Positions 158 to 8,129 of a stretch of DNA of 64,000 bases are shown here, piece after piece. Under the pieces are notes generated by a model. That model did no database searches. It was not told the DNA's origin and saw only the letters and a program-made list of their open reading frames with translations. A program made the position numbers and the translations under genes. Numbering within the stretch: the stretch's first letter is position 1; every line of letters starts with the position of its first letter. The stretch is from Pavona decussata. Lineage: Eukaryota. Location: the NCBI GenBank assembly GCA_977016875.1, contig CDRNST010000273.1, positions 1,426,001-1,490,000 of the forward strand. The letters run 5' to 3'.

Positions 158-3100
158 CTACCCTAAACTGAGATCAGATTTCAGTTTTTCGTCAACAGCC
201 ACGTCAGGACCGATTGTCAGTGTCATTCCAATTTTGTAAGGTATAATAAACGAGTACCTTGGAAGTTTGGTAATACACTGAAGACGCGGACAAAAGAAAA
301 AGGTTCTTTTTATCCAGGTCTTGTGGATAGTTCGATATGGGCCCTCGGTAGTCGCCTGCACATCGTTTTTGAATATTTCCTTTTTACAGGATGCACACTT
401 TGCATTCTGTACTGTTTTGCGAATATTTACGGAATAAATTTGTTCCGCTTCAGTGGAGCAGCGGACTCCAGCCGTAGGCACGTTTTTCGGAAAAGCATTC
501 AGAATTTTTTGCCACTGATTGTCACTGAACGACGTTTGGTACAATATTTGGTCATCACTTCCAAATTTGTAAACATTATGTAAAACCCACATCAGATGAT
601 GACAGTCACGACTGCTGCACCACGAAGACGAGCATGTGGACGACGATTTTTTGAGTGTAACCTCCTCTACGCAGCCCATGGTGTCAAGGATCTTGAATGA
701 GAATTGGTGCATGGATGACTCGCATGTGAGCAGGTCCATGTGCACACCTTCAACTTTCTTACTGAACATATTCTTCTGCTTTTTATTTGCATTATCACGT
801 TTGCCTTTCTTTTTCGGGCGTTTTTCTTTCTTCTTTTTGTCTGCTCGATGACTGTCTCTTGTGTTAATCTGAAATCGATCATGGGCCTGTTGGATGTTTT
901 CCATAGTTTCGAACTCCTGGTCACTTTCTATAGATTCTAATTCGGCGGCCTCCAGGGTAATTGCTTGCACAGCATCTGCCGATGCTTCTCTTGCTCTTGC
1001 CGTTTTCACTCCGCAAGTTTTAGTGCGAGACTCGACCGTCGGTCCACGGCCGACGGTTTTGAGCCCGAGAGATTGCCTTTTCTTCTCCGCAGCCTCCAGC
1101 ACTGCTCCCGCGCATTCTGATGTGACAACGTCTAGAAGACGTTTCCGATATCCTGTTGCGCGAAGTGATTTTGCGTTCGCTACTTCAGCAGAGGAAGCAT
1201 CACTAGCCGACTGGCTTCGACACCATCGTTGCCATCGCGCCTGCCGTCTCCACCACCATGACTTGTAGCCCTTCATCTTTTTTACATTTGTTGACTTTTT
1301 GTCTATCAATAGGTCAAGCTGTTTTGCTGCTTGATCCGCCTGTATTGAAGTTGGGGCATTGTAAGCATCCAACATCAAAGACTGGAATTTATTTTTGGAC
1401 TGGCTGTCTTGGAAGTAAATTTTATGCCGATTTAGGTCTTGTTTAAAATGAAAGAAGTCAGATACAGTCTTTTCTTTCACAGCGATCCCTTTAGCTAAAC
1501 AAAGTCCTTTCCAAAGTGCCCCCCCTTCGTCTCCAACGTATGACTTGGGATCCAAACCACATCCGAGATAATCAACGTTTGTGATGCCATATTCCACTGC
1601 CACCGAGGGAAGTGCATCATTCACGGCTTTGTCGAAGACCTCAACCATTAATTTGACATTTTCAGAATTTTCGCCGGGCTTTGGTACGTACATACTAACT
1701 AATTTGACATTTTGCCGTAACACAGGATCATAGGTCGTCATTTCTAATTCGGTGTAGTTACTGGCAACACTTTCGCAGCCATCCAAGCTTACAGGCTCGT
1801 CAACGAGTCCCAGGGTAATCTTTGCACCAAGCCGTATCTTATGTTGTGACGAAAGAATAACGTGATCGTCGCCCACATCCAAAATCAAGTTTTCATCAAC
1901 TCCCCTAGAGATAAAATCTTCTTTTAACAAACGAATGGCCTCTATATCTGATCCACCCGGTCTTTTTTCTTTTTCGATGGTTTTTTTAACGTACTGAATA
2001 TGCAACCTGTTGCTGTATGATAAGGCTACATCATTAACGTCATCCCCACACTTGTCACTAAGCAAGGCTTCACGAATGACGTCAAGTTGTATTTGCCCGG
2101 CAGTTTTTGTTGGCTGAGAACGAAGGATGTCCTCCAGAGTTTCCTTTTTTGGTTTGTCTTCCACGTTTCGTGGATTACAGCTGTGTGCAAGTAAGTAAAT
2201 GACAGTAATGGTCTTATGGCATCGATCGTTCTCAACATATTTCCTAGCAGTACAGGGTGTTTCAGTTGCGGTGGCATTACAATGCATACAACGGTCTCCT
2301 TGTATGAAATCTGCTTTGTTGGGGGTCTTTTCGATTTTAAGAAAAGGACAATTTTTATTCGTACACAGCAACGAGCCACGGCATACTTGAAGAGTTCGTC
2401 TTCCACCTTTACAGAAACCTGAGCGCTTACAGGGTTGTGCGCGTCCCCATCTCCAGTTATCAGTAACTGGCAAAAGTGGGTCTGCATCATTGTATTCCAC
2501 TCTATACTTGGCAGGTCCTTGAGGCGTCCTAGGGACTCTTTCTGTATATATTGTCTCCATCTTGTCAATTTCGTTCTGATTGACGTAAGATCGACTACCT
2601 TTACTGATAAACACCATGTCCGGTTCGAATTCCGATAGTTCCTCCTCGCTTCTGTAACAAAAAAAGACAGAGAAAGGTATAAAAATGAAATAAACTGGGA
2701 CTATAAGCGCATGACATATTACCTATGTTTTTTGCTTTTAGAATCTGTTGAACGATGGTTGCAATGGGGTTAATAAAATTAAGTGAAATAACCTTTCGGC
2801 TAAAAAATCGGAACATTTTAATCGTTGGTCTTAAAAAGCCCAAGAAGTTTACCGTCTCAAATCGCTTAATAGAGCTTTCAAGCCCCCATTTTTCATTCTT
2901 TTACTTGTCAAGATCTCCTGTTAGAATTGCTATTATATCTCATCTCTCACGCGGCTAAGAAAGAATTTTTAATTTTTTTTTAAAATCCTGGCATTAAAAT
3001 GCCAGTTAGCACGTTTACCGTTTTTCTCTGGTACCAAAAAGCAGTTGGCACAGGCTCCTTTGTACCCACAACCATGGAGTCATTCGCAAACCGTAAGTGG

Positions 3101-6100: not shown

Positions 6101-8129
6101 AAAAGCTGACCAGTTACCATAACAAAAGAAAAAGGTTAAAGTTAGAATCTGAGGTAACCGAAGTTTTTTTGGTCAGGGTAAACTTTAAATTATGGGTTAA
6201 ATTGACCATTACTTTTTCAGTTAAAATAACCGTTTTTGAAAGATTGTTTAAAAAAATATGGTTGTATTAAACGTAATCATACACGCAACAATTGCTCTGA
6301 CTCGTAGGCGATCATTATCTATTGTTTCATTATACGGTAGCTTACCGGCCTTCATTCTCGAAAGTTACCAACTCTAGGTAAGTGGCTATGACTTTTTAGA
6401 ATTTCCAATGTGACCGTTTACCAGAGCTTCGACTTTACAATGTTTATATTACGTAAGGGTATTAATAGTAGAAGAATCAAGTAATTTACCCCATGTACTG
6501 TTATAATAACAAGCTTGTAGTGCAAGGCGTCTGCTAAAGCTTGGATGACAAGTGAATTGGCATAGTTATTTCGGAGCATTTGTAAAGCTTCTGACCATGT
6601 TCCCGGCACTTTTCTGCCACCCATGTCTGTTTCACACAGGAAGGCCAGTCGATCATCTCCGTTTTCCTGTGTAAAAAAAGGAGAAGCAGGCCTATTTCTA
6701 TCATGACCATTAGTAGCGTTATCAGTGGACTACCAATCGCAAGATTTTAATGGATCCCAATAAAAAAATGCTGTTGGGATACGTGGGGTGACTGGATACA
6801 GTAGATAATAAAACTGCCTAATTATAGAAAATTAACGCTTCATGAAATTAAGGAGAACTCTCAAAATTCGCCTAAATTTAACTAAATTGCGTTGTTTTTT
6901 GTGGGCTTCATCCCCGCAACATTTCTTAAGTGGAGCGTTAATTTCCAATACCTTCACTTCATTCTGTCCGAAAACAAAAAGAAACTTAGGGAACAAAAAC
7001 CTTTTCTTTTCCGTAGTTTCAGTCTTTCACAATGTAAAAGCCTCAAAGATATGTCATCTGCAATATTTCCGATTTATTCTTGCTTTCAGAAGAGCAGCAC
7101 AACAGGCCAAGTATCTTAAGTTAAGAAACATCAACACTCACGTTGATTTTCTTCATTTGAACATTTGCCCCGTCCCTCGCGTTAATTCCCTTCTTCAAAA
7201 TAAATTTTCCCTCCATTTCGCATTAATTAACGTCCCGTTAATTTCTATAATAAGGTACGACAATTGCTTGAATGCCGCGTTTGACAGTGACTTTTTATTC
7301 TGGAAGAGGGCGGTGTAAGAAAAGGATAAAACCACTTCAATTTTTTTTATGAGAGAGTCATCATAAGAGTCCGCCGCTATTTCAAGTGAGCGGGCTGGAA
7401 AATTTTATGGATACTCAGTGTCAAATAGTTTTCGAAAATTGCTAATTCTAAAATTATTCATGAATAGGATAATTGAGAAACCACATAAAGGATTTTACTG
7501 GAAAATTGAAAGAAGGCGAAATCAGGACAGCCAACAATTAGCGCGAATTTTACAAGTTTGAAAGCAATGATTTAGGGCTACAAATTAAACAGCTCAAAGA
7601 AAGTCACATGCATAAACAATACAGAACAGAGCCGGATAACTTTAGAATCTCAAGAAGGACACTGGTAAGACAAGGGACAACATTTATTTTACGACAAAAA
7701 AAAAATGTCAAAAAACACCAAGAACAAAGTCGTAGACAAACATGTCATCAAGGCAATCGTTTTAGACTGATGAAAACCTAAGCAATCTTTTCGCATCTCC
7801 TGAATGAAATCGACCAGAAATGGCCATGAAAATTATCTACTTACATCAAACTGATGATTTTCCAAGTACTCAAAGATGAGCGAAGTCAGTATAGTCTCAC
7901 TAAATCCAATTTGAAAGAAAGCGGCGTAATAGAAGCATTTGCCGTCAGCTGGTGGGTCAAATTCTATCTCGAAACCAGCCTCTGCCACTCTAGTGGCGAG
8001 TTTTGAAGAAAGACTTGTCTGAGGGAAAGGACAAGCACATGCAGTAGTCAGCCAACTGACAGAGATATGATAACTCTGGTTCACTATTAAAAGATCAAAC
8101 CTGTTAAAATGACGCGATTTACTCACCAT
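158..8129 (-). CDS. OTU deubiquitinase - GCM/WRKY-like Zn finger - Mutator(MULE)-like DDE transposase - SWIM-like/Zn finger fusion protein, 9 exons, ~1162 aa
   Basis: GT-AG exons 8129-8127 (ATG), 8018-7845, 6666-6490, 5923-5816, 5668-5507, 5057-4911, 3758-3678, 3424-3282 and 2651-158 join in phase (3489 nt, no internal stop). OTU motifs: PADGKCFY, ANSLVIQALADAL, GNHYVAL. The last exon has a Cys/His GCM-like finger (CRGSLLCTNKNCP...CMHC...PCTARK...HSC), acidic residues SLDGCES / YVGDEGGA / SSAEVANA, a DFFH (C/DxxH) motif, degenerate SWIM (CSSSWCSSRDCHH) and a C-terminal CxxC...CxxxxC finger. Confidence 0.8.
4459..4607. other. Assembly gap (N run)
   Basis: Run of N. Confidence 0.99.
6817..7255. 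mobile_element. MITE in an intron of the OTU-transposase gene
   Basis: Imperfect TIRs cctaattatagaaaattaacg / cgttaatttctataataagg; TA on the right flank. Confidence 0.5.

Follow-up and report, generated by a model that had tools for sequence, protein, structure and literature searches.

We find that the minus-strand region 158–8129 of a 64,000-nucleotide (nt) stretch of Pavona decussata DNA (assembly GCA_977016875.1, contig CDRNST010000273.1, here C273, positions 1426001–1490000; the whole stretch is called the window below) is likely the coding part of an autonomous Mutator-like element (MULE) that encodes an OTU-transposase, that is, an OTU-type protease module followed by a DDE transposase. 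This wording takes in the steps that we propose for the expression and transposition of the element; the narrower statement, that the region belongs to a MULE transposon of which an OTU module forms an integral part, is in our view very probably correct. It is supported that the OTU exons and the transposase move together in one unit, which is bounded by terminal inverted repeats (TIRs) and carries a 9-bp target-site duplication (TSD).

Reading frame and exon structure

The listing of open reading frames (ORFs) gives a minus-strand frame of 819 amino acids (aa) at 158–2617, with its ATG at 2617 and its stop codon at 158–160. Together with eight short upstream segments, the coding segments are 8129–8127, 8018–7845, 6666–6490, 5923–5816, 5668–5507, 5057–4911, 3758–3678, 3424–3282 and 2651–158; all nine are bordered by GT-AG, and they sum to 3489 nt, i.e., 1162 codons with zero internal stops. 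This 1162-codon model is the outcome of frame arithmetic by script, and homology searches were run exon by exon. The segments contain the OTU motifs ADGKC (Cys codon 7935–7937) and GNHY (His codon 5843–5845), and the transposase residues D279, D363, DFFH390 and E478 were all located in the large exon. The joints given with the exons below come from contigs over window positions 2450–8400 that were obtained from three RNA-type runs (X1–X3, whose RNA status is our guess) and one DNA-like run (X9).

7845–8129, minus strand: first coding exon in the RNA contigs, with ATG 8129–8127, in-frame 8126–8019 and OTU part 1; it holds Asp 7944–7946 and the catalytic-type Cys 7935–7937 (ADGKCFYY), and aligns with the Cys-motif exon of relatives
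6490–6666, minus strand: OTU part 2, central helices (...ANSLVIQALADAL...); RNA joints 6666/7845 and 5923/6490; 68% aa identity to the equal-sized exon of the reef scaffold L040
5816–5923, minus strand: OTU part 3 with the catalytic-type His 5843–5845 (GNHYVAL); RNA joint and alignment to relatives
5507–5668, minus strand: Ser/Pro/Lys-rich linker exon; RNA joints 5668/5816 and 5057/5507
4911–5057, minus strand: acidic linker exon, with an 'EEYNPG..WKG' motif that is kept in relatives; RNA joints and relatives
3678–3758, minus strand: linker exon whose basic stretch KQKKRKRR is, by its composition, a likely nuclear localisation signal; RNA joints
3282–3424, minus strand: exon 8, with the conserved peptide 'MSGLSS..TP.K'; RNA joint 3424/3678, donor GTAAGC
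158–2651, minus strand: large exon, with acceptor ttgttacag at 2652–2660, 11 codons and then the 819-aa ORF

Ends, copies and derivatives of the element

Searches for further copies covered the 602-Mb assembly. A second full copy of 10.7 kb lies at C339:2067951–2078622 and, when 40 kb around both loci were compared, it matched window coordinates -7519..-6433 and -319..8578 at 96–99%. The two copies are 98–99% identical over the OTU exons, introns, ORF and ends, both keep the 1162-codon phase and every splice site, and the ORF of the C339 copy (2069531–2071987) is 99% identical and equally open. Within the block common to both lie the OTU exons with every intron, the ORF and a further ~1.5 kb on the 3′ side, and the similarity ends sharply at the TIRs. 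The element of the window therefore spans C273:1418483, beyond the window, to window position 8578, and measures ~10.7 kb without a nested BEL/Pao retrotransposon (see below).

8395–8578, strand not assigned: 5′ TIR of ~175–190 bp, recognized in both copies when the left end was aligned with the right end in reverse complement
8579–8587, strand not assigned: TSD ACACTGTTT, 9 bp, with its twin at C273:1418474–1418482, outside the window

In both copies the TIRs (~175–190 bp) consist of GCGAGCCAT-like 9-mers and a unique inner part, and the element terminates in ...GCAGATTTCGCAGACCC at 8578. The C339 copy is likewise flanked on each side by a 9-bp TSD, CATTTCCTT. TSDs of the Mutator superfamily are 8–11 bp long, typically 9, and long TIRs with 9-bp TSDs are the hallmark of MULEs (PMC6446971); a TSD of 9 bp and TIRs in the range of tens to hundreds of bp are what we found here. 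Two short ORFs of 100 and 82 aa at 8246–8582 were rejected as genes, being translated TIR 9-mer repeats.

Besides these two full copies, the genome holds dozens of decayed copies of the ORF as well as distant paralogues, and the 461 bp at 7940–8400, at the 5′ end of the element, recur at >180 genomic places with ~90% identity. Deletion derivatives are represented by three examples of 1–1.6 kb with both termini present (L037:8588–9528, L038:755–2369 and L039:510–1904), which share window 7866–8578 and C273:1418483–1418714; one of them retains an 85-bp piece of the 3′ end of the ORF. Their TSDs match perfectly in L038 (GACCGACAA, 9/9) and at 8 of 9 positions in L039. With two intact, near-identical copies at different loci and many non-autonomous derivatives, the element looks potentially active as judged from sequence, in line with the suggestion of an earlier reading of this DNA, made from the letters alone (the sequence-only reading), that the transposase may be active.

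The same data bear on the possibility that the region is a domesticated or immobile remnant, i.e., a host gene derived from a transposase. An intact transposase-like ORF that is conserved across phyla is what such a gene would present; however, the intact TIRs and TSDs at two loci, the many non-autonomous derivatives, the many decayed copies and the patchy, multi-copy occurrence in other genomes speak against it, and we regard it as the most remote of the explanations considered here.

Fold and catalytic residues of the transposase

Pfam returned no match for the ORF, for relatives that are 51–66% identical to it, or for paralogues that are 20–30% identical, apart from sub-threshold hits to SWIM, WRKY and Endonuclease_7. 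The MULE and Transposase_mut models (PF10551, PF00872) in particular matched neither the ORF nor its close relatives nor the distant paralogues. The Pfam miss reflects a family that is too divergent for the current hidden Markov models, and such a match is a criterion of detection rather than a defining property of MULEs. Hence, we relied on structure, using an AlphaFold model of the ORF built from a 17-sequence alignment (A1; mean predicted local distance difference test, pLDDT, 76). Foldseek against the PDB matched this model to the GCM domain (1odh, E 8.9e-5), the transposase of the IS256-family element ISCth4 (6xgx, E 1e-4) and WRKY domains. For the core, VIA-align ranked ISCth4 first (Z 11.2 over 263 residues, model 171–538), followed by Hermes (8.3), the P element (7.9) and RAG1 (7.2), and the nearest shapes in the ESM Atlas were clusters annotated as PF10551 MULE, FAR1, SWIM and ZSWIM1-3 RNaseH-like, including one MULE cluster that bears Ulp1 (Peptidase_C48). 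The domains assigned to the ORF are as follows.

2162–2518, minus strand: WRKY/GCM1-type zinc DNA-binding domain, residues 34–152 (Foldseek and VIA-align)
1004–2107, minus strand: DDE core, RNase H-like fold with a helical insertion, residues 171–538 (ISCth4 match)
452–694, minus strand: SWIM zinc finger region, residues 642–722 (A1 profile against the MEKK1 SWIM domain 9p40, E 7.7e-5)
161–457, minus strand: C-terminal Cys-rich domain, residues 721–819 (like PARP-1 zinc finger 1, VIA-align)

The four core residues D279 (codon 1781–1783), D363 (1529–1531), H390 of DFFH (1448–1450) and E478 of AEVAN (1184–1186; E478-x2-N) are invariant or nearly so in the A1 alignment, down to the 20–30% identical paralogues. 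On the model, D279 lies on strand 1, D363 after strand 4, H390 after strand 5 and E478 in a later helix of the RNase H-like core. Fold and conserved columns are those of a DDE transposase of the IS256/MULE type, and the (C/D)xxH motif after the second Asp is present as DFFH. The sequence-only reading had described a transposase that keeps D, D, DxxH and E plus several zinc fingers, and the conserved columns, the ISCth4 fold, the WRKY/GCM domain and the SWIM finger bear this out.

It had also called the N-terminal finger a GCM finger. A GCM domain proper, such as that of GCM1, is a four-strand WRKY-like core into which a zinc ribbon is inserted. GCM is indeed the best Foldseek match (164 columns, TMt 0.53), although plain WRKY superposes equally well or better on residues 34–152 (2ayd, Z 7.6, 75/76 residues, root-mean-square deviation 2.5 Å, vs. 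Z 7.3 for GCM, VIA-align). It is safe to count the modelled finger as a WRKY-GCM1 superfamily member; the two subtypes score too close together for the narrower name. WRKY-GCM1 fingers and SWIM domains are classical parts of MULE transposases. At the C-terminus, where Pfam has no match for residues 721–819, PARP-1 zinc finger 1 aligned with Z 7.4–7.5 (82–83 of 86–88 residues), a score range in which chance arrangements occur, which makes the match a lead only. PARP-1 zinc finger 1 is a sensor of DNA breaks, and we know of no report of a PARP-1-like zinc finger in MULEs. The models and conserved columns support the view that the large ORF encodes a DDE transposase of the Mutator type that has a finger of WRKY/GCM type at its N-terminus and, besides a SWIM finger, another zinc domain at its C-terminus.

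The distant paralogues (20–27% identity) include L018:279–3122(-), L021:534–4208(+), L019, L020 and L022, with open frames of 600–1225 aa and the sub-threshold Pfam SWIM hits; they are further MULE-like families of this genome that Pfam does not see.

The OTU module and its conservation in relatives

Pfam OTU (PF02338) matched neither the single exons of the window nor the N-termini of two predicted proteins among the relatives, P0023 (1085 aa, from the crinoid Anneissia) and P0033 (682 aa, from the octocoral Paramuricea). When the N-terminal region of P0023 was used in a word search, it recovered the query itself only. Both relatives align collinearly with window exons 2, 3, 4, 6 and 8 in front of their transposase part. 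When their N-termini were aligned with three window exons as separate rows (A2), ADGKCFYY paired with GNRCFYQC, ANSLVIQALA with ASHVVIRAAA, and GNHYVAL with GDHYMLL. We modelled P0023:1–175 as a proxy for the window exons (pLDDT 61, 5-row alignment). In the OTU fold a helical lobe bears the Cys and a beta-sheet lobe the His. The leading PDB matches of this model were all OTU deubiquitinases, with OTUD3 at E 2.7e-4 and TM 0.69, accompanied by OTUD5/DUBA, OTUD1, Otu2 and nairovirus OTUs (probability 1.00). The A2 profile gave a weak match (E ~0.02), covering both motifs, to the OTU of Tacheng tick virus 1 (7y5m) and to a similar 176-residue polymerase-L chain, and neighbours by feature in the atlas carried OTU with a score of 0.88. 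The Cys and the His are aligned and kept in the window, P0023, L035, L036, L040 and L043; the assignment of catalytic residues covers these two and not the third, acidic one. It is therefore supported, with the fold modelled by proxy from the crinoid relative, that the exons upstream of the ORF code for a protease module of OTU fold in which the Cys and the His are kept, as the sequence-only reading had claimed from the intact ADGKC and NHY motifs. That reading had named the failure of a structure search to find an OTU or RNase H-like fold as a possible refutation; the IS256/RNase H-like fold was recovered with the ORF model and the OTU fold with P0023:1–175.

The linker between OTU and transposase in P0023 (residues ~215–570) is expanded by about eight tandem repeats of ~40 aa (…YIISDESEENVSHVTRPKKHIKKEK…).

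The nearest relatives are found in coral assemblies and reef metagenomes. In the contigs L035, L036 (Antedon mediterranea), L040 (a scaffold of the Tara coral-reef metagenome), L043 and L044, the transposase ORF is preceded on its own strand by OTU-like, linker and exon 8-like exons, arranged as in the window. Across the five other assemblies that share this exon order, transposases are 51–63% identical to that of the window and OTU exons 55–68%, with equal sizes. In L040, for instance, exons 2–4 measure 174, 177 and 108 nt as in the window, with 55–68% protein identity vs. 63% for the transposase. The exon 8-like peptide stands directly before the transposase in P0023, P0026, P0030, P0033 and P0011, and likewise in L034, L035, L036, L040 and L043. 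Judged from these sequences, the combination of OTU and transposase is conserved between cnidarians and crinoids and is old. Since the OTU exons have diverged about as much as the transposase and stand in the same order in relatives, a recent capture of a host gene is ruled out.

This last point matters for a third copy in the P. decussata genome, C152:305721–311677, which matches only window 2815–8136 (exons and introns) and has neither TIR nor transposase. MULEs can capture host gene fragments (PMC6431247), and C152 could be taken for the donor, i.e., a host OTU gene of which a fragment was recently taken up in the manner of a Pack-MULE, with the in-phase fit to the transposase being accidental; that C152 holds the OTU exons and introns without TIRs or transposase, and is expressed, would agree with this. 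However, five other assemblies have these OTU exons in front of the transposase, and the >180 older derivatives (~90%) run unbroken across the 8136 boundary, which means that TIR, ATG and exon 2 were continuous before C152 arose. Further, the C152 block stops in the middle of an intron at one end and 7 nt short of the ATG at the other, as expected of a truncated copy. Based on these boundaries, the derivatives and the relatives, we rejected C152 as donor host gene and identify it as a truncated piece of the element, which leaves the capture explanation highly improbable.

RNA contigs and the question of one polypeptide or two

Six joints are present in the X1–X3 contigs and lacking in X9, namely 3424/3678, 3758/4911, 5057/5507, 5668/5816, 5923/6490 (X3 only) and 6666/7845; each has CT..AC ends on the plus strand, exactly at the predicted borders, and they account for 6 of the 8 proposed introns. 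Splicing of intron 1 (8126–8019) was not seen in these contigs, which are continuous over 7991–8153; reading through it leaves the frame open, with the same ATG and 36 additional residues. The sequence-only reading had proposed eight small exons in phase onto the 819-aa ORF and had named junction reads over the eight introns as the check. Its frame, GT-AG borders and 1162 codons hold, and six introns are confirmed exactly in RNA, whereas intron 1 is read through and the joint between exon 8 and the transposase exon is unseen; the number of small exons is probably seven rather than eight, since intron 1 is read through in frame.

What follows exon 8 bears on whether the element makes one polypeptide or two. 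Beyond the donor of exon 8, the X1 contig continues as far as 3228, whereas X2 departs at 3264 and X3 switches at 3281. The continuation of X2 (~1 kb) was not found in the assembly at <=2 mismatches, and that of X3 is a high-copy MITE-like (miniature inverted-repeat transposable element) repeat that is present neither near C152 nor in the element. With intron 8 retained, the frame runs through ...DDT into a TAA at the donor; as this stop sits exactly at the donor, retention would yield an OTU-only protein. It is thus conceivable that the element has two products that are never fused, an OTU-only protein of ~340–380 aa that ends at the intron 8 TAA and a transposase that starts from its own ATG at 2617, similar to maize MuDR, where mudrA and mudrB are separate products. 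The RNA contigs fit this arrangement in that they pass the exon 8 donor (X1 to 3228, X2 to 3264) and never reach 2651, with 2450–3046 lacking RNA; so do the position of the stop, exactly at the donor, and the ATG that the ORF owns.

Several observations in relatives argue the other way. The ATG at 2617 is not conserved in P0023 or P0033, and in L040 the conserved first ~26 residues of the transposase (…KGRRLYANQDEIDKL…) lie in an open stretch without an ATG; because there is no in-exon start, these residues need an upstream exon to be translated. A phase-compatible GTACGT…AG junction is found at the homologous place in L040, and likewise in L034, that is, phase compatibility is retained in divergent elements. 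The gene models of P0023 and P0033 have OTU, the exon 8 peptide and transposase in one protein, and an Antedon model splices an exon 8-like exon to the transposase exon; in all, gene models of four other species join exon 8 to the transposase. (We had considered the Antedon exon 8-like peptide to be continuous with the transposase ORF, and rejected this, as it is a separate exon that is spliced in the annotated model.) Nor do the contigs speak with full force for two products, since much of the RNA seen appears to come from C152 or from alleles that the assembly lacks, judging by several C152-specific bases in RNA-type contigs (6143, 7897 and 7958), and a C152 message cannot splice to the transposase exon because C152 has no such exon; X1 and X2 also carry a variant of the donor (3279 T>G). 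On balance, two products that are never fused seem rather unlikely to us, and we favor, as the likely arrangement from sequence comparison, that OTU and transposase form one polypeptide through splicing of exon 8 to the large exon. Fusion and separate products may also coexist through alternative splicing.

The following points weigh against the OTU-transposase reading, in whole or in part. The joint 3282/2651 (exon 8 to transposase exon) is absent from the X1–X3 contigs, in which 2450–3046 is uncovered. Some of the message, at the least, stems from the truncated copy on C152, so that the expression seen need not be that of the two intact copies. For the other genomes, the gene models are themselves predicted and may follow the phase logic of our own model. 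The OTU fold was obtained on a relative with moderate confidence (pLDDT 61, 5-row alignment) rather than on the joined sequence of the window, and the E478 region is badly modelled (pLDDT <50 at 461–491). Pfam sees neither MULE nor OTU in any piece. Finally, the full copies differ by 1–2%, and the last jumps were therefore not very recent.

Two minor observations concern the same contigs. The X3 contig has a 29-mer, AGAGAACAGTGGTGGCATAAAAAGCCCAA, directly after the exon 8 donor position (3281), and this 29-mer has at least 85 genomic occurrences, often in close inverted pairs (e.g., C36:609890–609964, C65:808826–808900 and C100:358696–358770); judged by this arrangement, it looks like the termini of a MITE. 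An alternative joint from 5924 to 6610, seen in X1–X3 with 9 extra letters and non-canonical ends, skips most of OTU exon 3 and probably derives from a divergent copy.

Proposed working of the element

Under the model that we favor, a single multi-exon gene would encode, in order, an OTU-fold protease, a low-complexity linker with an NLS-like stretch (nuclear localisation signal), the 'MSGLSS' peptide, the WRKY/GCM1-type domain, the IS256/MULE DDE core, the SWIM finger and the C-terminal zinc domain. Splicing of exon 8 to the transposase exon would give one OTU-transposase polypeptide of ~1160–1200 aa, whose WRKY/GCM domain may bind the repeated 9-mers of the TIRs while the transposase cuts and pastes the element. 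The OTU module could act on the transposase, or else on chromatin or on repair factors at the break, by taking off ubiquitin or a ubiquitin-like modifier, a role that we offer as a guess; the sequence-only reading had suggested self-stabilisation or histone deubiquitination as possible roles. Retention of intron 8 would provide an OTU-only product and, possibly, a simple switch on transposase output. Carried further, the OTU module would be a working part of transposition control, with intron 8 splicing leading to the fusion, retention leading to the OTU-only protein, and the protease shielding the transposase or broken chromatin from ubiquitin-dependent host responses; we put this forward as a speculative extension with a low probability of being correct.

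Relation to known elements and significance

The sequence-only reading had considered the arrangement of an N-terminal, multi-exon OTU plus GCM unusual. This was overstated, given that OTU-bearing MULEs are on record (PMC6446971, PMC1702500) and that OTU also occurs in Ginger1 and Helitron (PMC2836005). That is, the element is not a new kind of system; OTU-bearing MULEs are already known, and the N-terminal OTU module is ancestral. A close case is MuDR-6_HM, a Mutator element of Hydra for which an 'Ovarian Tumour Gene' motif is listed (Dupeyron et al. 2019, PMC6446971, Table 1, group 14), which is likewise a cnidarian MULE with one ORF and an OTU motif. The two can be compared by that table line only, which gives no TIRs and has the TSD as 'not indicated in RepBase', whereas for the present family TIRs, TSD and exon structure are all defined and the distribution crosses phyla.

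In Medicago truncatula, MULE transposases carry a C-terminal OTU protease, for which polyprotein processing has been suggested (Babu et al. 2006, PMC1702500). These proteins are similar to the one described here in uniting a WRKY-GCM1-type domain, a MULE transposase and an OTU-superfamily protease. However, they are from a plant and have the OTU at the C-terminus, while here, in an animal, it is N-terminal, spread over three small exons and followed by a linker of ~190 aa, and the two OTU modules were probably acquired independently. More broadly, Ginger1 transposases have OTU or Ulp1 at the C-terminus, animal Helitrons have OTU, and Mutator elements of hydra, lancelet and plants have Ulp1, and these proteases have been proposed to act in ubiquitin-regulated DNA repair (Bao et al. 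2010, PMC2836005). The Ulp1-bearing MULEs (plant KI-MULEs, hydra and lancelet Mutator, NOF-FB type) and the OTU of Ginger1 and Helitron share with the present element the presence of a ubiquitin- or SUMO-type cysteine protease in a DNA-transposon protein. They differ from it in that the former have another protease family (Ulp1/C48), whereas the Ginger1 integrase and Helitron RepHel belong to other transposase superfamilies, and the Ginger1 protease is C-terminal. Structurally, the catalytic core is matched best by ISCth4 of the IS256 family (PDB 6xgx; Z 11.2), which shares only ~10% sequence identity and has no WRKY/GCM, SWIM, OTU or introns. IS256 is the accepted prokaryotic kin of Mutator.

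What the present analysis adds is a complete, bounded animal Mutator element with a deubiquitinase-type protease, including its ends, TSD, exons, two intact copies and a swarm of derivatives. As Pfam misses both transposase and OTU, the family is invisible to routine annotation and would appear as an 'uncharacterized protein'. The element could also serve as a candidate active MULE for an animal system, and it gives an entry to the question of why ubiquitin- or SUMO-type proteases are so often taken up by DNA transposons.

Other features of the locus

The remaining features of the element within the window are non-coding.

8130–8394, minus strand: subterminal 5′ region, probably promoter and 5′ untranslated region; RNA-type contigs lie on 8139–8296, and the region is high-copy in the genome, which makes it uncertain from which copy these contigs stem
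4459–4607, strand not assigned: assembly gap (N run) inside the intron 4910–3759, between segments 6 and 7
1–157, minus strand: beginning of the element's 3′ non-coding part, which runs on outside the window to the left TIR at C273:1418483

The joint 4911/3758 spans the N run in contigs of all three RNA-type runs, and the flanks of the gap are collinear with two other genomic copies. Because it is intronic, spliced out in the RNA contigs and collinear at its flanks, the gap leaves the reading frame of the model untouched; that it hides an alternative exon is conceivable. A second assembly gap in the window, at 18887–19084, is away from the element.

One contig of run X1, at low depth, joins window 1901–1930, inside the transposase ORF, to 5277 in intron 5, skipping ~3.3 kb, and is an internally deleted form of the element, as DNA or RNA. 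Finally, the window copy has 6.1 kb in its 3′ part that are missing in the C339 copy (L014:3568–9680, corresponding to C273:1419568–1425680, left of the window). These represent the nested BEL/Pao long terminal repeat retrotransposon, with an intact 1860-aa Gag-Pol ORF (Peptidase_A17, RVT_1, rve, DUF1759, DUF5641) and ATTTTGT on both sides.

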